Positions 799-48,089 of a stretch of 64,000 nt of DNA are shown here, piece after piece. Both the position numbers and the translations under genes were made by a program. The DNA comes from Mytilus californianus (Eukaryota): contig NW_026262582.1 in the NCBI RefSeq assembly GCF_021869535.1, positions 7,378,001 to 7,442,000 of the forward strand, given 5' to 3'. Below the pieces are notes generated by a model that worked only from the letters and a program-made list of their open reading frames with translations, did no database searches and had not been told where the DNA came from. Numbering within the stretch: position 1 is the first letter of the stretch; every line of letters begins with the position of its first letter.

Positions 799-3700
799 TT
801 AGCACTCGACAATAGAACATGGGTTTTCTTTCAACATCTTCTCAAATGGATTTTTCTTTGGAATACAATCAACATCGCTGCTGACGCCATATCTTCGTAT
901 TTTAACAGACTCAGTTTTGCCATCTTTTTCAACAGCATCTATTCGAACTGCATTATTAACTGACATTCCAGGGCTCTCATCAAAATAGTTAAATGGTATT
1001 AGATAGAAACTACGAGACATTCCTGGTGTGTGGGTACTAGGCAAGTCTTCCTTCTTAGGAATGTGGTACATTCCCATTGAAACCCAGGCAACAAGGTCCT
1101 GTCAACATAAATACATATAGATTCATTGAATATTTATACAAAAGCTTAGTTTTGTACCATTTTTTAAACTATAATAACATAAACGGATTGAATGAATTTT
1201 ATCCTTGGAGAATGTAAGAATTTTAGAAAACTATCTACTCAAAACTTTTCAAGCACAATCGTTCAATATTGCAGTATTATCAAAACTTTTTACATCTATC
1301 CTTTACACTAGTAATTTCCAGTGTCAATTTAAAGATTGACTACAACATCTTATTAAACAGAGCTTGTTCTGCATATGACATGTATTATGCTGAATTCATA
1401 CAGATCTTTCATCAAGACAAAAAGAAAAGGTATCTTGCAAATGAAAAAAAAAAACACTTTATAGATTTCGAGAGTCCTAAGTGTTTTTCTGGAATTGACT
1501 TCATTGAGAACTCTGAAAACATAATTTCATATCCAAACATCGGTATAATTCAAATCGCCTTAATTTATCCATTATTTCTTTAACTACGTTCTAATTGCAT
1601 TATTTCCCTAACATTGTATATTTTTTCCTAGTTTTCATAGTGAAAAATTTAGTATATAAAAGATAAGGAGATGAGGTATGATTGCCAATGAGACAACTAT
1701 CCACCAAAGTATACTTTTTTTCCAATATCTTTTAATTTGTTGTAAATGAAACATACTATAAATATACAAAAAAAAATGTGCTCAAAATTACGGATCATAC
1801 TATTCTATGAGTATAATGCACAAGGTTATTTCAACAATTTTTACTTCATTGTCAACAATACTGAATGAACAAAGTCATTACTTCTTTTTCGGTAGAGTAT
1901 AATTTTCCTTTATGCTTTCTATCAATATAGATCACTGGTCCCTGAGAATTTTCTACACTTGAGTTAACTTTTTATAGTAAATTGATGGAATGATATAAAG
2001 TATTGTAAATGCTTAAAACTTAAAACAGACCTCGATTTCTACCAACGGCGAAACTTTGATAAATTGCATTATAAGCTAATTAAAAGGTAATTTCAATAAA
2101 AAGTAATAATGAGAATTACTACGAATGATATTTGTGAAAAATATTTTACCTTACTTTACTTTTTTAAACGTATCAAAAGGTTTACTTTCAAGAAATTTAC
2201 CCTACGGTGCAAAACAACTGTTCGCTTTTAAATACTAAATTCGAAATATGAGAATACCGACATTACATAAAAAAAGATGTTCTCCAACAGTAATTTTCGA
2301 AACATTTAATTTACTATTAAAATAAATCCATATCATTGTTGGAGGGGACTCTTATATTGAGAGGACAAAAATAATGCAATAACATTAACGGTACCAATTT
2401 TACTGCGTATTTTGACAATCAATGTCAATTCAGTGATGCTCGAGAGGCCAAAATTTGGAAATCCAAAACTTACCAAAGTTGGAAGCATTCCTATAACTGA
2501 TATTTTTGTGTATGAATACTTTACCTGATCTACAATATTTTCGTTATCGTCAATGAACTCTTGAAAATTAAAAACAGGATTGTAAGAATGTGCAAACATG
2601 TTGCTACTCGATGGTTCACTATCTTTGTACTTAGTTACGGCAACCTGATATTGCGACCAGCTGGCAGCTGGATTGTTTCCATCATCTGGAGGTCTTGTGT
2701 TTTTTATCATTCCTTCATTTACCAGTCTATATCCTGCCGAATTGCCAAACTTGTCTTTGACATTATTATTAACAAACGTTAGATACTTTGGAAAGTTGAA
2801 GTCAAATTTATAGGCTCCTTCAAATTCAGTCTTCTTAAGTCGTTTTATAAACTGGTTTTGAATAATCGTGGCATTGGGAACATCACTTGCTTCATTTGGA
2901 GTAACGACGGATTCAATATCCAGAGTTTCGAATCTGTTCTTTGTTCCTTTAATGTCAAGGTCAACTTTGAAATGATATAAGTGTTGATGCAGAGGTGCCA
3001 TGAGGTTATCATCAAGCTGGAAACTAAATGGATTGTCTTGTCCATACCATGTGCTCGCAACAACACCGGAAGCTGTCACTTTAATTTTCATGACGCCATT
3101 ATGATAAAATATAAAATCAATAATGTACTCATATGGATAGACTGTCGGAATTGTCCTTACTATTAAAACAATATTTTCAACACCTTCATAGAAACTATGA
3201 ATATTTTTAAAGTATCCATGCTGACGACGAAGTGGTAGTCCTGTGTTGAATTCAAATACACAAATCGAATGTTCATTGAAAAGTGGTTTATCTTGGGTTT
3301 CAACCTTGTAAGATGAGCTAAGGAATGTAGCATCCAAAGGACAATCAACTCCAGGTACTAGATATTTTGCTAAAGTTCCTGTCTGGTAGCTGTTGTCTAG
3401 ATAAAAAGATGTATATTCAAACGGTTTATAGCCGAAATAAAATACTGCTAGTTCCTGTGTGCTAACTTCATATGCAATACGTTCATTTTTGTATCGGATG
3501 TCATTTAGCCTTGGTCCACGGAAAGCTGCATTCGCAACATCAAATTCCCAGAAGCCATATGATATATGTCTATCGTAAATATTGTATCGTTTACCATCAG
3601 GGGAAACTTGCTGGGGGTCCTTCAAGGGCTTTTCAAATGGAGGCATGCCTCTTGAGGTCAAAATACGACGAGAACTTCCATTGGCATCAGGAAAGGGAAC

Positions 3701-4467
3701 TTTTTGTATATTATGCTTGTATCTATTGTAATACCTAAGAACATCTTCTAAACATTTGAAGAAATGTCCATCGAACCATACTTTCAGCAGAGAAAAATTA
3801 TCAAGTTCCGATTCAACCAAAAAGGCAAAATCTAAAGGTCTCAATATGTTATATTCTACATTATGCTGCACCCACCAAAAGAATCTTCGCTTTCTTACGC
3901 CAGATATTACGGAAGTTACCTGATTAAAATAGTTAGCTATCAGGCATCTATCACCGCAATTAGTAAACCGTCCGCCGTACAGGTCTAACAACATGTCACC
4001 AAGTGTCCTGTCTAAAAAAATCAAAACTTTTCCAACGTAATCTGCTACATTAAAAGGTCTGTCTATGAAAGGAAGTGATTTTGGTCGGTACGGAACATGT
4101 TTATAGGCGGAAGGGTTTGGTAAAGGACCAACAACTATTTCAATGACGTCTGGTTTTGGAATAGCTCCTCTGAAAATCATAACCTGTGCTTCTCGTTCTG
4201 GTTGAGGATGTCCATTATCAAGGTGATTTAGTATATCCCTTTTTAAAGGCCGATATATATCAGCAATAAAAATATAGTTCGAAGTAACCGAAGCCTTTTC
4301 TGCAACAGTGAGGTTTAAACTTGATTCTGCATAAAGAAAATCAAGAAGGCCTTTAATTTCTGTTTGTGTTAAATCACGAAACACAGATGGATGATCACTT
4401 TCCCGAGTATCAATGTTGCCATATTGGGATGAAGGTCGTCTACAAATTGGAAGCCGGGAAATATTTT
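799..4467 (-). CDS. AOC: Copper-containing (TPQ) amine oxidase, AOC1/AOC3 family; 5'-partial model: exons 4467-2525 and 1098-799
   Basis: The large exon starts after a ttttatag acceptor (AG at 4469-4468). It encodes ...PSVFRDLT...YLDNSY (catalytic Asp)...TVYPYEY (TPQ region)...HQHLYHF (two Cu ligands)...FIDDNENIVDQ, then a GTAA donor at 2524. A ttgacag acceptor precedes 1098, giving the phase-0 join DQ|DLVAWVSMGMYHIP (third Cu His) and a stop at 799-801. About 746 aa are recovered. The upstream exon(s) carrying the N-terminus were not located. Confidence 0.93.
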
Positions 4468-4775: not shown

Positions 4776-5249
4776 ATACCATTTCAATGTCAAAACAGAA
4801 GTACGATTAACGAATACGTTATGAATATGGTGCGTTAATTCGCGTTCAACGCGCTTTTCTGGATTAGCCTGCAACAAAAAACTCAAATAAAAGAAAGAAC
4901 GAGTAGTTGGATAAGTACAACAATGATTCAAGGAAACTGTTTTGATACATTTAGATCATTTTATTAGATTTTATGGTAATCATGAGCTTTCGCATTGACT
5001 GTGACTTTCGTATTTGTTAAAGTTTATGGTACGCATATATATTTTTGTTTTAATTGATAATCGCAAGCTTTTTTGAGTTTTTTTTCAGCTTTATGTTACT
5101 CGCATATGTTTGTAGTCTCCTACTTTTAGCAAAATCAAGGATTTTTCTTCACTCTAACTCCATGCTTCCATAATCACCTACCTATATCTTTTAAATGATT
5201 AATATTGTCTTCAACTGAATGAATAATTTTGTCTGTGATTTGTGTCACC

Positions 5250-5545
5250 TTGTTGTGCCCCCGTCGTAACGGAGGGGGCATTAAGGTTTTCCCTTGTCCT
5301 TCCGTACGTCTGTCCGTCCGTACATACGTTCGTCTGTCCGTATGTCCGTCCGACCGTTCGTACGTACGAAATTGGTTTCCGATCTATAACTTAAGTTTGC
5401 CTCAACCAATTGTTCTGAAACTTATACACAATGCCTATAACCCAAAAACTCAGATCAAGTTTAAATTTGGGTGGAGTTATGCCCCTTTCTAGCGTTATAT
5501 ACAAGCGGGGAATCAATTGTGTCCCATGGACACATCCTCCATTCA
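5250..5545 (-). mobile_element. HINE/Pearl-like non-autonomous interspersed element with CGTC/CGTA microsatellite
   Basis: (CCGT/CTGT)n tract at ~5300-5370 followed by aacttaagtttgcctcaaccaattgttctgaaacttatacacaatgc. This is the reverse complement of the core at ~63255-63400. The class label is inferred from architecture. Confidence 0.55.
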
Positions 5546-7004
5546 TTTTTTTCTATGTTTTTGCGGTTGTGTCTTTTTTATTCACTTAGACTTTCGAAAG
5601 GAAGATATATCTCATTTGGATTGTTTTATACAGTGTCGTTTTTTTGCTATTAGATAATTCATTTAAAAAAGTAAGAAAAAGCTAGTTAAAGTACTGATGT
5701 TTACCTTTCATCATCTTAATTGACATCTTTGATGCTATGATTGATTTTGTTTGTTGTTTACCTTCCTTTCATCTATCTTATATTTCATTAAACTGTTTTC
5801 TTTTAAACATTAGTATCAAAACATATAACTGTTGTAAGGGACTCTAGTATATTAGGGAACAAAAAGAACGTAAAATTATTGGCGGTACCAATTTTGTTTC
5901 TGCATTTTATCTAGGCGTTGATAAACAATATTTTAAAATAATGAAAATATTGTTTTTTTAAATTCAAAATGGGGAAAACTTATGGTGGCAAACATTAACG
6001 AAGCATTTTTTTAAAATTCAAAAAAGGGGAAACCTACGATGTCATTAATGAATCAGTTGCAGTGTGTCAATAATATAAACATGATACATCGGTATCTAAA
6101 AAAAATACATTTTTGCAAACAACCGACAGAGCTTGTTTAAAAGGAACACATAACCTGTGAGTACCGGTGTCGAAACAATTAGATGAATCATTCTAAATCC
6201 AACAAAAACTCTCAAATAAAGATGAATTTTCCTAAATCAAACGTAAATTAAAGACGTTTTGCTGCATTTGATCACGTAAGAAATCATCAAAGATTCCAAG
6301 GATCTACAAGGCGTTTAACCAATTAATGAATATCAGACTGAGACATTTACTTCCATATATAATTTTTTTGGCAAAATATTATGCATATCTTGATTGGTTA
6401 GTGCTGATAAAACCATAGTCAGATAAAATTACCGTAATTCTCAAAGCTGTAATAAGGCGAATGTAGCTACCGATGTTCAAATCTTGTAAATCGATTCCAA
6501 ACAGACAAATTAAGGAAGCACATTAATGAGACAATCGAACCAACTCTAAAAAGAGCGAGATCGGATGTTTCGACAGGCGACGTCTCCTGCTATTCATGAA
6601 CCGCCCGTCATGCGAATTCACACGTAATCTCAGTCTGCGAAATCAATCCTCATTTTAAAAAGAAAGCCTAATTTTATGTTATCCGCAAACAAATATTTGT
6701 CTGGACTTTTTTTTCATTTGATAAGCCTTTACATTTAATTCAATATAATAGGATCTTCAATTTGCCACTTTCTTTGTATAAGCAGTTTGTCTAACCTTAG
6801 AGCCAGTTGTTTTCCTTTAACCATTAAGTTGAGAACAAAGTCGGTATTTGAAAATAGAGTATTGCACGAAAGACTGGTAGGCACATTCGTTTTGTTAAAT
6901 TCTCATTTCCCTTTTGATTTTTCTCACTTCCAACTTCACATATCACACTTCCAAGAAGGGAAAACACATTTAACAACGAGCAAAACCCTTACCGTATAGT
7001 TAAC

Positions 7005-7215
7005 TATAAAAGACACCGGCATGACAACATATGACACAATTCAAACGAGACTGGGGACGAACCAATAAACAAAGAACAAATATGACAGACAGCAACCAAC
7101 GATAATTAAATAAATCACAGGCTTCTGACTTTGGACATGCACATAAAGAAAGTGTCGGGGTTAAACATGTGTGTGAGCGCTCAACCCTCTCCTAACCTTA
7201 AACAGTGTTGTCAAC
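7005..7215 (-). repeat. Fragment of the abundant interspersed repeat (family A)
   Basis: Contains ggggttaaacatgtgtgtgagcgctcaaccctc and ttctgactttggaca, the reverse complements of the family-A core seen at 25850, 26790 and 50170. Confidence 0.7.
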
Positions 7216-8527
7216 AAACTGTAAAAATTAATTGGATTTGACTTGACCAATCAGATTAACAAGAAGCGCTAAAACAACTAACGTAAAGAAAAATACCCAG
7301 AGAACAATATAACAATACACTCAATAACTAAAATTTAGTTCAAAGTTCACTTACAACTAATAAATGGTGGTATTTGAAACTACAACTAATATAATGTTGG
7401 GATGGGTTTTTAACGTTTCAGATGAAAGCAAATTCAGAAAAACTCTTCAGACGCACAAAATTAAATAATTTGTATTCAATAAATAAGTCATTTCTCATTT
7501 TCTTAGAAACAATACACAATATGTCAACAATATCGTTTTCTTATTTTATACGAACTTATACATGTAAGTTAAATGCATCGCTGGTGTTTATAAGGAGATA
7601 TGTAGTAAACGTTTATGATATAGTCAATCGTTTTGTCATATCTAAAATCTTGCATAAAGATCTTGAAAAAATCTTGATGTTGTGATGTTTCGGACTCGTG
7701 ATGTCTTTTCGTTGCTTCACGTCATACGAATTCCTTAAATAGTGACGAATGAAGTCTGTCATACGGTAAAGTATCCATTTAAATATCTTCATGTACTAGT
7801 AATTAGGATTTCAATTTGGGCAATTTCCAATATAAGTGCATGGCCACGGTCAAAATTTATTTTATTTTAAGTATTTTAATTCGCTGTAAAGCTGATCTAG
7901 ATCTTTCTTGCACAAACATGTCTAAATGACAATATTGCAGTGTCATTCTGTATTTACAAGGTTAAAGTGTTGGCATCAGAACTTTTATATCTATAATTCT
8001 AAATAGTACAAAATAGCATTTTTCTTTCCGGTATGTGCTGAATTAATGTTATCTCAATTGTACGCTTCTATACATAGGTTATCTTGGATAAAGATTGTTT
8101 ATTAGGTACGCTCTTTTCTAAAAGGACCCGAATTAAAACTGTTCGCATCTGACTTTTGTCCTGTTGAAAGCTTAAAAACTTTAGTATATAAGATCTGTTG
8201 TCACTCTTTTAATTTCCGCTGCAGTTTTAAAGATCAGTGTAATTGACCATTACTATTCCGAAAATTAAAAGAATCTTTAGAATATGAGTCTTGTAACTTC
8301 ATACATGTTTTGTCATACTGTTTTGTAAGTGCAACTAAGAGCAACTGGGTTCCTTATATGTGCTAGTATTAATTTGCCTTTCATTTCTCATCTTTTGAAA
8401 GTTTTTGTATTAATCTTTCTTCCTTTAATCGTGACATATTGTGTGACATTGAGATCTTAAATCCTACGAATATTGTTTTTTGCTCATCATTTCGACGGAC
8501 TTCCAGGATTTGAAATATTGGTTTTAA

Positions 8528-8955
8528 GATGGCACGGTAGTATTTACATTCCGGAATTAAGGTTGCTCTTTTGTGTACCCTACTTAAGTCAATGTATCTG
8601 AACAGTGTGATTGGACAAAAAATACAGTATCTACTGAACATACTTCCCAAACGCAGGGATGAATCAGGTGTAGAAAAAATATGAAATAATTTTACATATA
8701 GGTGAAAATGAATTTTTGAGAATTTTTTTTCAATTTTGTATTCACTTCATGATAAAAGACCTAAAAGCACTAGTGGCCTTATGTTTATAAAGAGAGCAAA
8801 AACAGTAAACGGTCATCATAAATATTCAAATTAATTTCTTAATATTATAATAAAAAGTACTTCAGTTAACTGTATATGTAGAATTTTGGGCAGTGTAAGA
8901 TATTCTGAAAAGACTATCATTATCTCTATGTTCCAGGAAATACTACCGTGCCACC
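8528..8955. mobile_element. Non-autonomous Kolobok-like DNA transposon (TTAA-flanked MITE)
   Basis: ttaa|GATGGCACGGTAGTATTT ... AAATACTACCGTGCCACC|ttaa: ~18-bp TIR with 1 mismatch, purine-purine start, TTAA on both sides (8524-8527, 8956-8959). Confidence 0.65.
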
Positions 8956-9304
8956 TTAAACAACTAGTTACAGCACCTGTTTGTTCATTCAATTAATTAA
9001 TTACTTTGTACGTTACTATATATGCAACTACCACATATTTAATGTGTGTTGCCATTTCTTTCTTTTAAAGAAAAAGTTATGAAAAACTTACTCCTCGATG
9101 TCCATTTTTGAAAAAGATTGAAGCATTTCCTACTAGATACCTATAAATATAAGTGTTAAAGTCATAATCATTAGAGTTAAAGAAAGAAGAGTGGCTGCAA
9201 TAATAAAACAAAAAAGATATTACACTTTTAAACATGTTGTTTAGTTACAAATATCGCCTCTTGAACATTAATAAGACATCAAGCAGTATATGATTAATGA
9301 TCAC

Positions 9305-9470
9305 TTCCACATGTGGATTAGGATCTGCTTACCCTTCCGGAGCACATGAGATCAACCCTGGTTTTTTGTGGGGTATGTGTTGCTCAGTCTTTAGTTTTCA
9401 ATGTTGTGATTTTGTACTGTTGTTCTCTTTCGGTCGTTTTTCGTTTTTTGCCATGGCATTGTCAATATAA
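9305..9470 (-). repeat. Interspersed repeat family B fragment
   Basis: Reverse complement of GTGCTCCGGAAGGGTAAGCAGATCC; same family as 13925-14275 and 16340-16620. Confidence 0.7.
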
Positions 9471-12362
9471 GAATAAGAAGATGTAGTGACCAAATGACAT
9501 CAAAGTTAACAACTGGACAATTTGTTTTCAACATACGAGTTTGAATATCCCTTTGGTATGTTTCGCCTCTATCATATATGTTTTTATATTCTTAAGCAAT
9601 GAAATGTCGCTGAGAGAATTAATTATGAAAATAGCGTATATATTAAATTATTTGTAGGTCAGTAATGGCAACATCAAAAGCTTAAGCACATCAAACGACT
9701 GGAAAACAACTGTCATATTCCTGACTTGGTACAGGCATTTCTTTATGTAGAAAATGATCGATTAAACCTGGTTTTATAGCTAGCTAATGAGTTGTTGCAT
9801 ATGATCTTAATGTGCAGGAACCTTAGTTATCTCTTCACGCCAGGAATCAGATTAAGTGTCCCTTTTCTCACCGGACGTGGCTGCGTATTTATACATCTCG
9901 CACAACCAAAAGAATGCCCCACTTTAGCAAGGGTTTTGCTGCCAGTCGAACGAAGACTAAAAGTGATCGTACAGTGTATTTGTATTATCTAGTCACCCTT
10001 AAGGGTGGCTATAATATATATAAAATATCAGTGCATTATAAAACAAAAGCTTTCACAACTCTGTTACAATGGAATTGATAAATATATTAATATCATTTTC
10101 TTTTCGAATTTAGCAGATAGGCGTTATCAAAGCACAAAGTTTTTACATAAATGAACGACACCCTCTAAATTGAGAAAATAAAACACGTAGATTGTTTTTG
10201 TAAGAGCTATGATTTATGAGTTTGAATGTCCCTTTGCTATTTTTCGGCCATATTGTACTCAATTATGTACAATAAAATGATATTCAAAATTATAATTTAA
10301 AAAGGACAGAGGTTTGACATAGTCAGGTAAAAAGTAAATTAGCAAAAATAAAATATACGATTTGAATGCATGTTTGGTACAATGTTAGCGATATGAAGGC
10401 AAATAAATGATTAATTGTGAATGAATCACGAAACACTTTATTAACTAGTTTAACTGAGTGTCAATTCACTTGGCAGATGATGTGAACATATCAGGAGACG
10501 ACGCATTTGCTCGCTCTTTTCAAATTTATGCGATACCCTCAGAGGTTTTTTTTAATAGATTTGTGTTTTTTTTAATGGATTTAATGATTTGAACATCGGT
10601 ACACTACTGTTGCCTCTAATTCATCGTCTTGGAAAAATCTCAACAGTCATGTTTGGAAGAAATTAAAATATAATTAACATTTTGTGATACAAAAAGTACA
10701 TTAGTACTTACACGATTTAGATTCCTGGAGTCTGAAAGTGTAACATATATAAGCAAGCTTACTACTAAGACATTCATCATAATCGATTACTCCAAGTCTG
10801 AAACAAAAATTAACATTCTGAATATCTTAGTTCAGTTAAACTTTAACAAGGCTAAAAAATACCTGAAACCGAATACCAAGACATAAACTGACCACAGTGC
10901 CAAAAATCATGCGCAGTTGTTATTAATCAAGCATTCTGAATTTCATATTTTAGTCTAACCTCTATCAAGTATCAAAATAAATACATCCAAAATACAAGAA
11001 CAATGACGGACCTCAGTGCTTACAATCCACGTGTATCACAGTTTATAAGTCAAACATTCTGTATATCATAATTCAGGATTAACGTCATATTCGTCGCATC
11101 GAGTATTTAACACATGTCGTATGCATTTAGATGATCTTTAAACCATTTTGTTATTTGTGCATTATTTTTTATACCTTGCTGCATCAAATAAATTTAAATC
11201 ACTCATATATTTACATTGTTGTTATAAATTGCTTGTACAAATGTAAAATTTTGTTATTTTGTTATGCAATTTTGCTTTATTGTTCATACCTTTGTGCATA
11301 ACATCATTTAAATCAATTGCATATTTAGTTTGTTGTCAACATGAACAAATCTTTTTTAAAGAAGGTTATGTCATGATCTACATTGATAGTATATTTGGCG
11401 TGAAATTTTGAAGAGAAACTATTAATTTTGACTTCGTCATATTTTTACTTGATTGATTTTTCAAATATTGCGATTTCGCTACATAAACGCTTCACAAGTA
11501 TGAATACATTTTCCTGTAAGGAACATGGATTATAATTTCTAATTAACCGATTTGCATTATATAAAGTTTTGATATTTAATTTTTTTAACTGCCAGAGAAA
11601 ATTTAATGTTAAACTGGTATATTTCTTGCTGTCCAATTCTTTTCTGATGCAATTAATCAGAAATTATATTGCGTCAGTTATTAAGATCGATGTTTTGATT
11701 TGACTTCAAATAGAATCCATGATACGTGGCAGGAAAATGTCGACACTAATTTTCCCTTCACAGGACAAGTGCGTCCGGGCAATGAAACTGTCATCAGGCA
11801 CGTAAACATGTGTGAGCATCAAACCTATAGGTTTTAAACAATCAAATCAAAATTTCTAGATAGAAACAGCTCTAAAATAAGATACAGTTTGTATTATACA
11901 TTGTCAAAATTGTATAATATCCTTGTTTTATATTCCCAAATCTCTGTTTGTTACCTTGATTTGTCTCTTTCTGATCTATTTTTGAGATTTGAACATCGTT
12001 AAACTACTGCCGCCTTTATTAAAGACTTATCATTTATGTAATTATGACTACTGTCTTGTATTTAAGATGATATTATATCTAAAACAAAAAGTCGAAAAAA
12101 TTATGAATGGTATGATGTTATACTTCTGTTAAATTTCTGTAATTGTGCTTGTCTTATTATGTGTACGATGATTTGTACACCGGAGATTCGTTACCTTTAC
12201 CGTTTTTGAGAAGTAAGGATTGTAACACCTACATCGTGCAATCGTGTATAACCGTCCAAAAGTTGTTCTTTAATGTAATTTTTTGCCATTTGTACAACGA
12301 AAACATGCGTTTCAATCATTGCACTGGGATTTGGTTACGTGTTGGTTCAAAAACGAGGATAT

Positions 12363-43220: not shown

Positions 43221-43746
43221 CTGTGATTTCCCCTTTTCAACCAGTAAACAACAGATCCGTAATGCGGAAGAAAATTAACTAAATTTTTGTAAATTAATCG
43301 AAAAGCACAGCAATTAAAACTTTTTATCTTGTTGAACAAATAAAGTTCAAAGAATTTTCCCTGACAGATGAACACAATACCAACAGAATTAACTGCATAC
43401 GTTTAATATCAAGTTTGAATTACATGTAATTTTTAACTTCCGACAAATTTTAGAGGTTTTTTGTTTGAAACTGTATCATATTACATCTAAACGGCAATAC
43501 AGAAAGATTGATTGTGAAATGAAATAAAGAACGTCAAGTGAGTAGTCAAGCTTAACATGTTTTCTAAAAGAAAACCATTGTGTATGGATAAATAGATAAC
43601 TGTATCCGGAGTACAAAATTCCGGAAGTCAAAGTCATTTAAAATGAATAGAGTTACTTCCCCTAGTACCATAAGAATGATTGACTCATACAAGGTCGATC
43701 AAAATAAATACCCCACAAAATAATCTTTACCTAATCAGTAAGGATG

Positions 43747-43855
43747 CAGTGGCCGATCCAGGGGGGTGTTCTGGGGGTTGGAATCCCCCCTTTTTTGACG
43801 ATCAATGCTTTTGAATGGGGACATATGGTTGGAACCCCTTTAAAAATGGCTGGGA
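43747..43855. mobile_element. Degenerate MITE (CAGTGGCGGATCCAG family)
   Basis: cagtggccgatccagggggg...gatcaatgcttttgaatgggacata..gttggaacccc...aaaaatggctgg; matches 54276-54445. Confidence 0.7.
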
Positions 43856-43989
43856 TGTGCTTGTCTATTTTGATCAACGAAACCAAACTAGCATCTATAA
43901 TTTTTTACGCATCGCGTGGCTTGACAATATGCTTACCATAAGAGAGCCTAAGATCCTGTATCCACATCTAAGTTTAGCTCACAATTTAC

Positions 43990-46567
43990 ATTATCGCACC
44001 TCGAGTAAATAGTCACATTGTGATTGGTTTAACGCCGTCACGTGGTGACCCCCTATGGACCCGTAGGGGGTCAGTAGATTTCATAGGGGGTGTCATGGCG
44101 GCGATAGGAGATGACTGATGTGCCGCTTGGAATTTTCAGAACGGTATTTTAAACGCAATACCTTATCGATTCAAGTAATTATTTGGGAGTTGTCCCCCGT
44201 TGACCAGTATACAATATCAGTACTTTAATTGAAGTTATCTCCCGTTTCAAACAACATGTGACGTCATATTTTCGTCTGCAACAAAATGGAGAGATTCGGG
44301 ACGTCAACACGTCAGGACATTGACGATAAAAGACGGAACATTCACTCCGAAAAGACGCAAAAAAGTAACACCCTATCTGCAAAATTGTTCAGGGAATATC
44401 TTACTAGTAAAAATCATGAAGCTGACTTTGAAAGCTTTACAACACAACGTTTGGTTGAATCGTTATCTCATTTTTACCTTGATGCTAGAAAAACAGATGG
44501 TTCCATGTATAAATCCTCTTCCCTGGAATCCATTCGACATGGCTTGAATCGCCACCTTAAAGCACCTCCAAACAATAAGGACTTTGACATTATTAAAGAT
44601 GCAGCATTTCGATATGCAAACATGAGCTTTGACGCTGCAAGGGCCGAACTGAAACAAGCAGGAAAAGGAAACGTTGAACACTGTCCAATTATCCAGGAAT
44701 CTGACAGGGAGAAGCTGTACAAGTCAGTCTACTTTTCTACACAAACCCCCACAGGACTATTTAACAAAGTCCAGTATGATATAAGACTGTATTTTTGCCG
44801 ACGAGGTGCAGAAAATATGCATACAATGACCAAGTCAACTTTTGCTTTGAAAACAGACCCAAATACAGGAATGAGATACATCGAAAAGATTTTAGATGAA
44901 TTAACCAAAAAACATAGAGGAAATGATAAGGAGACAACAAGTGGAGTCATGCCAGAAGCTACAGGTACATTAGTTTATATATTTGATAATCATCAGGCTT
45001 GGTTAGTAATATGTCATTAATTACACCCCCCCCCTCCTCCCAAAAAAAATAATAAAAAACAACCCCAAAATATTGGGTAATTTAAAGTTAAAGAGTCCCA
45101 CCCCCGAAACAAACACAAAATGAAAATGTAACCTGATTATCCACAGACCATCTAATATCTTATTTGACGTGTCGTGAAGTGCAAAAGCATGGAATGGTTT
45201 GTATTTTTACTTTTCAATCATCAATGACTGCAGCACAAAAAAAAAGAAATGTCAAAATTTTCTACATATTTGTATACTTTAAAATGTTTTTTTTTTTTTT
45301 ACTATAACTATATCATATAGAATTTTGTATTCCAGGCTCAATGTATTGTCCAGTGGAATCCTTTATAAAGTATACAGACAAGCTGCACCCTGATTGTGAT
45401 ATGTAAGTGAATTTAACAATAAATAAAAGCTACAATCGTCAAACAACTTTAAACACAATCATAAGAACAAAAACCCCCAAAAAACATGAAAAAACATGGG
45501 TAAAAAAAAAAAAAAAAAACACAGCTGAAAAAATTCACCAAAAGTATATTAAAGAAGGTATGTGTCATAATTGTTCTAAATGTCGAGAAAAGCCAGATTT
45601 TTTTAAAGTTAATTCTTCATTTTATTCTTCATTTAAAAAAAATTTCAGATTGTGGCAGCGTCCAAGGGACTGCTTTGTTGATGACGACAACGAAATATGG
45701 TATTACAACGCACCTGTTGGGAAGAAAAAGCTGAAAACATTTATGAGTGACCTGAGTTTGTCATGTAAACTTAGCCAGAAATATACAAATCATTCCATAA
45801 GAGCAACGGGAGCTTCAATTTTGTCAAAAAATAAGTTTAATGATGCTCAGATAATGTCTGTTACCGGTCACAAATACGTACAATCTCTATCCGTTTATCA
45901 ACGGGTAGACACGCAAGAAAAGTTACAAATGGGACAAACTCTGGGAGTAACTATGGGAGCTGTGCCAGCCCAGATAGAGGCTTTACCAGCACCTCCTATT
46001 AGACCAGCACTACCAGCACCTCCTGTAAGACCAGCACTTACTGAAAATGGATCTATGGCACCTGTTCTTATTGAAGCAAATACTCCGCAGAATTTGCATT
46101 CCGATTTCGAAGGATTCGATTTGAACGCAATATTAGGGGACTTTGATTATAATGAATCATCCATTACTGTTAGCAACACAAGACAAGCTGCCGGTCCACA
46201 ATTATTTCACAAATGTAAAGTGACAATCATTCAAAATCTAACATTGAACAAATGACATTCATTCCGAATTGTATTTTCAAAAAAGAAAATGCTCTAAATA
46301 CTTGTTAGTAGTTGTGTTAATAAATTCCTATTGTTATTGTTATTATTTTTCATTGTTAAATTTTGATATTTTATACTAAACTTGGCAGAAAACGCTCTCT
46401 GTGCGATAAATTTGTTATACGGTTCGCTACTGACCCCCTACGGATCCATAGAGGGTTAGTAAAATCCATAGGGGACTCGGCCTACGGCCTCACCCCCTAT
46501 GGATTTACTAACCCTCTATGGATCCGTAGGGGGTCAGTAGCAAACCATATAACTTATAATAGCTATT
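43990..46567 (+). mobile_element. Crypton-type tyrosine-recombinase DNA transposon, apparently complete
   Basis: Contains a spliced YR gene. The 5' end ATTATCGCACCTCGAGTAAATAGT recurs at 54163; there is a small 5' hairpin (44046-44073) and a large 3' palindrome (46414-46553) ending ...AATAGCTATTT. No TIR or clear TSD. Boundaries are inferred from related copies. Confidence 0.8.
44286..46255 (+). CDS. Crypton tyrosine recombinase (DUF3504-type), 450 aa; exons 44286-44964, 45336-45402, 45649-46255
   Basis: GT-AG introns (phase 1, phase 2); 679+67+607 = 1353 nt = 451 codons with no internal stop. Catalytic-type residues: R in FCRRGAEN, K in ELTKKHR, H-x-x-R in NHSIRAT, H in TGHK, Y in SLSVYQ. 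Spliced junctions read ...EATG|SMYCPVESF...HPDCDI|LWQRP. Confidence 0.88.
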
Positions 46568-48089
46568 TGCATCTCAAATTCCACGTTACCTCTGTCATAG
46601 CGTTTCTCGAGAAATTTTGAGATCACACATTGCCTTCTTAAAATGCCTTGTAACAAAATACTTCAGGATACGTTTTCTACTTTTTCTAATTCTGCCTTTT
46701 ATCATTAACTACTATTTTCTTTTTCCAATTGACTGCGTTTACTTCCTTGTGCTTTCAGAAATATATAAATATTCTCTCTCAAAACAGCACAGACTGTTGT
46801 ATAGGATTCGATACTCTCTCCACTCCTTCCGATATTAACTGAGACGAATCCTTGTTAGTTTCATTTCCTCCGCTTAGTCATATGCTCATATTCAACGGGT
46901 ACTCTGGTCTGAAGTCGGAGAGAACAAGATAGCAGGCAATGTTGGCCGCCTTCACAGGAATGTATGTGAATAGAAAGAAAATATAATGTGCTTTCAGAAA
47001 TTACAAAGAAAAATTGGTGTTACCATACTCGTTACTTGCTTCATAACAAAATAGATAAACTTACTGTACATTCCCTTATAAAATAAATTGTCTATTTTAT
47101 TTCTCCTATTATACATTTAACATGGACTTAAAATTTGAAGTTCTGAAAGATTTTCTACTTTTGTTAAAATAAATGTTACCATAAGATACAAATGTTTATA
47201 TTTTTCATGTGCCATAGATGAGGGTCTTTCATTTCAGCATTCTTTAATTTTTTAGGCATCTTTTCTCTATTTTTAAATATTTTTTACCTATTATTCTCTA
47301 TTTAAGCACCTCATTATTCTCTTTTTTTTTTCTTTCTTATTTTTTTTGGTTCAATTAACTAGTACCGTTTTTATGAAAGTACTAAGCTAAATGTCAATAT
47401 TTATTCGGGTTCAATTCATTTGGCTGATAGAAAGGTTTAAAATAAAATAGTGTTAATAATCACGCACAAGTCTGGCATTGTTTTCACAGTTATATTATTT
47501 TTTTACAATGTAAATGATCCTAAAACAACTATTTTCTGAACAATGGAGTTCACTTAGTACAGTTTGTCTACGATTCTTTTGAAGTAGTGGAATCTTCAGA
47601 CGTTTCATGTTATTACCATAACAACGCGTGCTAATTTATCGTCTGCTAAAACGTCTGTCATTTTCAATCATTATGTTCAACTAATAACTGAAAAAAAACA
47701 ATGTTTTGACTTTAATGATATATTTAACCGAAAAACATAAACTCTTCACTCATTTTCTCGTGGAATGTAATGGTATTACCTCACAAATACATCCAACATA
47801 TTGAAGTAGAAACAGTGTAAATCTTGCCTAAATTATTATATACAATCTAGCCATTGTATATTTTTCAGATATTTATAAAAAAAAAAACAAGGAGATTGAG
47901 GTTTTCTCAAAATATATATTTTGTATCCAACAAGGACGTGATCACCTTTGATTTTATTTTGCTTAATAAATCAAAAGACGGATATCATGTACGACCAAAT
48001 GAAAAGAGGAAACCCACATTAAATGTCACCTATAATGCATAAAAGAATGAGAAACAAAAGCTTCACCTAAATGTAAAAGCAGAAATTAA

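Follow-up and report, generated by a model that had tools for sequence, protein, structure and literature searches.

The mechanism by which Cryptons transpose has mostly been inferred by analogy. Cryptons are generally low-copy elements whose only distinguishing feature is a short direct repeat (PMC8969392), and terminal repeats have been reported to be absent from animal Cryptons (PMC3212892). The CryptonA elements of animals (Kojima and Jurka 2011, PMC3212892) carry a single tyrosine-recombinase open reading frame (ORF) with DUF3504/QRICH1-type similarity and no C-terminal GCR1 domain, generate no target duplication and are outnumbered by their non-autonomous derivatives. CryptonF-1_cRei of Chlamydomonas was the first Crypton seen to move (PMC9977147). 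The element described here, which shares all of these CryptonA properties, lies in a 64,000-nt stretch of the Mytilus californianus genome without any stretch of N (hereafter the window; C2:7378001-7442000 of the searched assembly, which comprises 1.65 Gb in 175 contigs). It is a CryptonA/DUF3504-type tyrosine-recombinase transposon, and its insertion is polymorphic, not fixed. The locus combines an intact ORF, a family of related copies, exact boundaries, no target duplication, a target consensus, a fixed joint and head-to-tail joints. As a whole it is best explained, with good confidence, as a recently inserted, unfixed CryptonA copy belonging to a system in which the recombinase would join the element ends into a circle, target a dyad site and mobilize short non-autonomous derivatives.

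The element occupies the following interval (here and below, positions are those of the window unless another sequence is named).

43991..46558 (+), whole Crypton element, 2568 bp, 5'-TTATCGCACC ... AACTTATA-3', with ends common to about 50 copies

Contigs from four sequencing runs were placed on 43600-46950. A 455-nt contig from X1, another individual with the same species label, covers 43812-43989 and then continues directly at 46558-46834, with a depth equal to that of the flanks; a 473-nt contig from X9, which carries a second species label, likewise joins 43989 to 46558. One nucleotide (an A) is ambiguous at this empty-site joint. Because no other place in the assembly matches the first 287 nt of the right flank, the two contigs represent the allelic empty site, not a paralogue, and the insertion is absent from both. 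A first-pass annotation, made from the sequence alone, had claimed definable ends at 43990 and 46567; the ends are indeed definable, but the copy alignments and empty-site contigs place them at 43991 and 46558, since all copies end in ...CTTATA while the base before TTATCGC varies. A target-site duplication was rejected, being absent from the window copy, as seen in the empty-site contigs, and from about 45 other copies.

The target consensus was derived from the non-redundant flanks of insertions (42 left and 45 right), with these preferences at positions relative to the insertion point:

-9, T in 29/42 (p=1e-6)
-9, T or C in 37/42 (p=1e-6)
-8, A in 34/42 (p=3e-11)
-7, A or T in 38/42 (p=6e-5)
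+1, not C in 44/45 (p=5e-4)
+2, T in 42/45 (p=1e-17)
+3, A or G in 43/45 (p=3e-12)
+4, G or T in 42/45 (p=2e-10)

The target is YAW-N6-^DTRK, which is two-fold symmetric (YAW-N6-WTR), and insertion takes place where the 6-bp spacer meets the right half-site. This rule is satisfied by the site occupied in the window, CAA-TTTACA^ATAG, as well as by the element's ends when joined to each other, TAA-CTTATA^TTAT. The corresponding features are as follows.

43982..43990 (+), left target half-site and 6-bp spacer, CAA TTTACA, fitting YAW-N6 and kept in the empty allele
46553..46558 (+), CTTATA, 6-bp spacer of the putative crossover core TAA-CTTATA^TTAT
46559..46562 (+), right target half-site ATAG (DTRK), kept in the empty allele

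The exact head-to-tail joint ...CATATAACTTATA|TTATCGCACC is present seven times in the genome, compared with zero occurrences of a reversed-pattern control. Among the tandems are a deletion derivative placed after an autonomous copy, and dimers of a non-autonomous family resembling miniature inverted-repeat transposable elements (MITEs; described below). Such tandems are expected from re-insertion, because an inserted copy regenerates TAA-CTTATA plus the target DTR at its own 3' joint, and tandems alone are therefore no proof of circles. The joint itself is fixed: all of the 40 scored MITE matches reach the CTTATA end, 30 of 30 extracted copies end in CTTATA, and no variable 6-mers were seen after ...CCATATAA.

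Two exchange schemes were rejected. Insertions displaced by 6 bp would be expected half of the time from two-strand exchange over a non-homologous 6-bp spacer, yet the 40 scored MITEs and the 30 extracted copies included no such case. A strict TTAT core common to target and element, with one copy left behind in the empty site, is incompatible with the empty allele, which reads ...TTTACA|ATAG... and contains no TTAT, so that only the degenerate match of DTRK to the 5' TTAT remains.

The recombinase gene is divided into three exons (44286-44964, 45336-45402 and 45649-46255), which together form an open coding sequence (CDS) of 1353 nt specifying 450 amino acids (aa) plus a stop codon. The uninterrupted spliced ORF, canonical splice sites and good ATG context noted in the first-pass annotation were all recovered: both introns are of the GT..AG type and the start context is acaaaATGG.

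44286..44964 (+), exon 1 (phase 1), coding for aa 1-227, which comprise an N-terminal QRICH1-like core-binding domain and the start of the catalytic domain (R173, K208)
44965..45335 (+), intron 1, GT..AG
45336..45402 (+), exon 2, a 67-nt micro-exon; its final base is T (G in an X1 contig from another copy), giving codon I249 (R in relatives)
45403..45648 (+), intron 2, GT..AG
45649..46255 (+), exon 3, containing the stop codon and encoding H297, R300, H323 and Y332 as well as a Pro-rich repeat
46319..46324 (+), AATAAA, candidate polyadenylation signal 5' of the palindrome, read from the letters and of putative function

The splice model is supported beyond the splice consensus, because the spliced protein is gap-free at both junctions against a 53%-identical, intronless paralogue of 442 aa in this genome and is colinear with the gene models of Mytilus trossulus (92%), M. 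edulis (90%) and M. galloprovincialis (83%). The position of intron 1 (aa 226/227) is matched by an intron in a relative from Ostrea edulis (L072 3001-4422). A relative from Clytia hemisphaerica and a second Mytilus family are intronless, unlike the window element and the Ostrea edulis relative. Within the 2568-bp element, only the pieces of the recombinase ORF exceed 130 aa, and neither a reverse transcriptase nor another transposase ORF was found, which sets the element apart from DIRS, Ngaro and MarCry.

The protein carries the motifs FCRRGAEN, DELTKKHR, NHSIRATG, GHK and SVYQR, which supply R173, K208, H297, R300, H323 and Y332, in agreement with the full catalytic set (R, K, HxxR, H and Y) claimed earlier. 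In a 72-protein alignment of the family, the six catalytic positions (the Arg of RG.EN, the Lys of TKN, HxxR, GH and the Tyr) are each at least 90% conserved, and the window protein keeps all residues conserved at 85% or more, except for N209K. The HxxR, H and Y of the family profile align with the catalytic residues of XerA, and the profile also matches the solved QRICH1 structure. Exon-by-exon Pfam searches gave matches below the cut-off to QRICH1 and DUF3504 (exon 1) and to positions 103-171 of the 172 of Phage_integrase (exon 3). In full-length relatives, DUF3504 was detected in all six, and Phage_integrase and QRICH1 in five of six each; the DUF3504 match in the intronless paralogue scored 45.9 bits (cut-off, 29.7). 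A profile search of 1.84 billion cluster representatives returned 12,829 relatives at E<=1e-3, of which 1,404 reached E<=1e-30, and the recombinase family is therefore very large. The structure of the 53%-identical intronless paralogue, standing in for the spliced window protein, was predicted with AlphaFold (AF2); the predicted local distance difference test score (pLDDT) was 86 with the 72-sequence alignment and 41 with 6 sequences. The paralogue model superposes on full-length Cre over about 350 columns with template-modelling (TM) scores of 0.53/0.70, and also on QRICH1, XerA, lambda Int, Tn1549 Int and IntI; it is no closer to IntI than to Cre. The sole long ORF of the window element is thus a two-domain, Cre-like tyrosine recombinase. 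The proposed Crypton identity holds because of this recombinase ORF, the DUF3504 domain of its full-length relatives, the Cre/QRICH1-like model, and the lack of both a reverse transcriptase and a target duplication.

Full-length copies with 93-98% identity were found by DNA search on C1, C57, C165 and C46, three copies at one segmentally duplicated locus (C165/C157) falling in the same range. A subfamily with ~80% identity is present on C2, and numerous further short matches are confined to the element ends. The assembly contains about eight coding copies, all of which except the window copy are broken, as protein-level searches agree; their lesions comprise a 44-bp deletion, 1-bp deletions, an internal duplication and a 180-220-bp insertion. 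Private codon changes pooled over the copies (26 synonymous and 66 non-synonymous) look neutral. A full-length copy in M. trossulus (87% identity) has unrelated flanks and occupies a different site.

The MITE-like family consists of ~360-bp elements, of which ~105 nt correspond to the 5' end of the full element and ~205 nt to its 3' end. A first look yielded 1138 loci, and the 40 scored loci are mutually 96-100% identical. In DNA run X1, the sequencing depth was 5.3-5.9 in the flanks, about 37 in the coding part and 5000-9600 at the ends. Five MITE copies on G000:C99 between 73.45 and 75.07 Mb (L045-L048 and L062) have both flanks identical, so that the MITE-bearing segment must have been copied several times over in this part of C99, which spans about 1.6 Mb. 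At 43712-43935, a short distance upstream of the Crypton, lies another very high-copy repeat, with a summed contig depth of about 32,000 compared with 5.5 for the single-copy flank, and RNA reads map to it.

A second Crypton family in the same genome, Mytilus family 2, is 2191 bp long and intronless and has no BLAST-detectable DNA similarity to the window element. The four copies fetched are 99-99.5% identical and all have intact 442-aa ORFs, and at least one further open copy was found in genome searches.

G000:C121:5148500-5153500 (reverse complement), Mytilus family 2 copy L031, element at 1828-4018; other copies are L032, L033 and L034

Family 2 looks more likely than the window family to be the currently active autonomous Crypton of this genome. 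The earlier description of the surroundings as otherwise decayed is correct for the other copies of the window family, but not for other Crypton families of the genome, which have several intact copies.

The ends of the window element contain the following features.

43991..43999 (+), 5' terminal arm TTATCGCAC, forming an outer stem with 46401-46409 once the ends are joined
44023..44028 (+), element positions 33-38, an ATTGGT box without variation among the five 5' ends compared (those of the mussel families, the MITE, the oyster and the hydrozoan)
44046..44089 (+), 5' copy of a 44-nt motif bearing TAGGGGGT/ACCCCCTA boxes; the motif occurs twice more in the 3' palindrome
46401..46409 (+), GTGCGATAA, inverted copy of the 5' terminus, which with ATTT-GTTATA makes up a pseudo-core to the left of the palindrome
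46414..46553 (+), 140-nt palindrome with 50-nt outer arms that are 96% complementary

Six TAGGGGGT/ACCCCCTA boxes are present, all within the ends and none in the interior. The ATTGGT box could be a CCAAT-type promoter box or a binding site for the recombinase. In three of the five ends (window, L030, L031, L072 and L073 compared) CACGTG follows it, and such a combination of CCAAT box and E-box could likewise form a promoter or bind the recombinase. When the joined ends are folded, the palindrome runs across the joint, with base-pairing between GTGCGATAA and TTATCGCAC at the 5' terminus; a small internal loop, in which ATTT faces TTATA, is bordered by the crossover point. Co-variation of GTGCGATAA and the 5' terminus was seen in the MITE and three further families. 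The MITE 5' terminus is CCGCGGG instead of the CCTCGAG found here, and its partner arm has changed to match; in the outer stem, TTATCGCACCGCGGG is paired with CCCGCG-TGCGATAA in the MITE and TTATCCCCGG-CTTAG with CTAAGACCGGGGATAA in family 2. The absence of terminal inverted repeats, as first annotated, is therefore true only loosely, the termini of this clade carrying an elaborate conserved structure. In deletion derivatives (L017 1501-1862; L003 3963-4286; L065 1320-1513), the breaks fall on the centre of the 3' palindrome or lie symmetrically to either side of it (about 2458-2505 in element numbering).

The same layout is found in other families. In family 2, the 5' end begins 5'-TTATCCCCGG..., and the 3' end contains the inverted copy ...CCGGGGATAA-ATTC-GTTATC, an unrelated 140-nt palindrome and ...GATAAC-TTATA-3'. 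The Ostrea edulis element has TTATCACG... at one end and CGTGATAA-ATTC-GTTACA ... GTAAC-TAATA at the other, and the element of the hydrozoan Clytia hemisphaerica has the same end layout. The dot-bracket pattern around the joint is identical in four families, the palindrome sequences of which are unrelated. A more distant DUF3504 recombinase gene (L077, GCA_013332995.1) is followed downstream by a 160-nt palindrome at 2096-2256 with a different flanking core, and shares its contig with an adjoining Dicer-like gene. The metagenome contigs L075 and L076 stop right after the recombinase gene.

In the mechanism that we favour, the recombinase would synapse both ends and excise a circle bearing the composite joint ...ATAA-CTTATA^TTAT-CGC..., and the circle core would then recombine with a loosely matching, two-fold symmetric genomic site (YAW-N6-^DTRK). 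Exchange would take place at a single fixed phosphodiester at the right edge of the 6-bp spacer, with the repeated boxes of the 5' subterminal region and the 3' palindrome probably serving as accessory binding sites. The same machinery would mobilize roughly a thousand ~360-bp derivatives that possess only the ends. Each insertion would also regenerate a good target at its own 3' joint, which would account for the perfect tandem arrays.

Several observations weigh against this account, some of them concerning the mechanism and others the window copy itself. The circular intermediate is inferred, and head-to-tail joints can arise without circles. The Clytia hemisphaerica copy is bordered on both sides by a 9-bp direct repeat, ATATTATAC (L073 2464-2472 and 4776-4784), which the model does not predict; this repeat was seen in no mussel or oyster copy. 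Within the window protein, N209K replaces a 92%-conserved Asn beside the catalytic Lys, and S325Y replaces a residue that is Ser in the closer aligned relatives. The G>T change at the last base of exon 2 results in R249I and in a weaker, non-consensus splice donor. RNA depth over 44272-46399 was zero in the 6% of the raw RNA run X21 that was read, and a 723-nt X17 contig, the RNA nature of which is a guess, begins inside intron 2 and has eight differences, and so derives from another copy and is uninformative on splicing. One open ORF among about eight copies of such divergence could survive by chance. Moreover, the MITE ends are only ~88-90% identical to those of the window copy, a comparison suggesting that its own recombinase may not have driven the MITE burst.

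The functionality of the window copy is thus uncertain, and it is possible, if somewhat doubtful, that this copy is a dead passenger of a family that is or once was mobile, with an ORF left open by chance and moved by a recombinase from another copy. Every other copy of the family in the assembly is broken, leaving the window copy with the sole intact ORF. Its private changes (5 synonymous and 8 non-synonymous) show no evident constraint, and the N209K and exon 2 substitutions, together with the lack of RNA reads over the coding part, fit the same explanation. These points are countered by the retention of all six catalytic residues and of every other residue conserved at 85% or more, apart from N209K itself, and by the polymorphism of the insertion, which need not be old; the private changes may also come from a functional source copy that is missing from the assembly. 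The description of the locus as a potentially active animal Crypton consequently stands for the family, but is unproven for the window copy.

A further explanation takes the palindrome, folded into a hairpin or extruded as a cruciform, to be the actual substrate: the 5' terminus would pair with its inverted copy, one strand pair would be exchanged and replication would complete the reaction, as in integron attC and CTX-phage attP(+) recombination. The identical loop-and-stem geometry around the joint in four families with unrelated palindromes is consistent with this proposal, as are the co-varying outer stem of the MITE and family 2, the fixed joint without the 6-bp shifted products of two-strand exchange, and the deletion breakpoints at the palindrome centre, a pattern expected if hairpins form in vivo and their tips are cut. 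We nevertheless consider a folded substrate unlikely, because two inverted duplex core sites with accessory boxes explain the same symmetry. Gene conversion can homogenize palindrome arms without selection for folding, a single-stranded intermediate is known for no Crypton, and the geometry and one-sided products are equally compatible with duplex sites. It is similarly improbable that a clade of CryptonA transposons, from hydrozoans to bivalves, uses a conserved composite site in which a TAA-CTWATA^TTATC core sits in a 100-180-nt palindrome completed on end-joining and acts in folded form with exchange of a single strand pair. If true, this would be the first eukaryotic counterpart of integron attC/CTX attP(+) recombination, and the 360-bp MITE would be a minimal substrate for a eukaryotic integrase that generates no double-strand breaks.

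Domesticated, host-serving DUF3504 genes (KCTD1, KIAA1958, ZMYM2-4, QRICH1 and WOC) are single-copy and syntenic, evolve under purifying selection, are fused to host domains and have mostly lost their catalytic residues. That the window gene is of this type can be set aside as highly implausible: it contains introns, and some of its relatives are named KCTD1_15 or KIAA1958-like in databases, but it is a multi-copy element with defined ends, no extra domains, a full catalytic set and about 1000 non-autonomous derivatives, its orthologous site is empty in another individual and another species, its copies decay neutrally instead of having a low ratio of non-synonymous to synonymous change, and the M. 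trossulus copy lies at a different, non-syntenic locus.

The mechanism of Crypton transposition is made directly testable by this locus with regard to circle formation, one- versus two-strand exchange and the role of the palindrome. The locus offers exact boundaries from occupied and empty alleles, a statistically well-supported, dyad-symmetric target rule that is also obeyed by the joined ends, abundant minimal non-autonomous substrates, and an end architecture conserved across phyla despite sequence turnover. With ~1000 young derivatives and polymorphic insertions, the family is a live source of structural variation in mussels. Newly described here are the empty allele, the consensus of the target, the fixity of the joint and the finding that the palindrome carries on across it.

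In comparison with the animal CryptonA elements described previously (PMC3212892), the window element has an ORF split by two introns, and its family has strongly structured ends, in which the core TTATC...AAC-TWATA is conserved and which carry a palindrome of 100-140 nt, repeated boxes and a second, inverted version of the 5' terminus; targeted literature searches found no account of Cryptons with such palindromic or hairpin ends. Its derivatives also reach about 10^3 copies, in contrast to the low copy numbers of Cryptons in general (PMC8969392). DIRS1-type retrotransposons similarly use a tyrosine recombinase and have termini complementary to an internal region, the circle joint being the recombination site; unlike the window element, which has no second ORF, they encode reverse transcriptase and RNase H and are much longer.

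Like the window family, CryptonF-1_cRei (PMC9977147) has a short terminal motif resembling a degenerate target (CACCG/CAYCG there, TTAT/DTRK here), an unoccupied site consisting of the target sequence only, which fits the clean excisions reported for it, and a copy number greater than one. In terms of the Goodwin model, confirmed for CryptonF-1_cRei (PMC9977147), the terminal TTAT corresponds here to the donor motif and DTRK to the degenerate target. The two differ in that CryptonF-1_cRei belongs to group F instead of A and no palindrome has been reported for it, and its activity was seen directly in mutation-accumulation lines (PMC9977147), whereas that of the window family is deduced from polymorphism alone.

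Among recombination sites, integron attC and CTX-phage attP(+) are, like the site described here, acted on by a tyrosine recombinase and composed of a pair of imperfect inverted copies whose centre is unpaired; the one-sided products are also consistent with exchange of a single strand pair. This likeness is an analogy alone, since the present system has a eukaryotic host and a recombinase no closer to IntI than to Cre. Cre/loxP and other simple tyrosine-recombinase sites are also similar, in that the predicted paralogue fold matches full-length Cre and the putative core consists of dyad half-sites around a 6-bp spacer. In contrast to Cre/loxP, the conserved half-sites of the window family are only 3-4 bp long, the target spacer need not match that of the element, and the products have a single fixed joint rather than exchange across the spacer.

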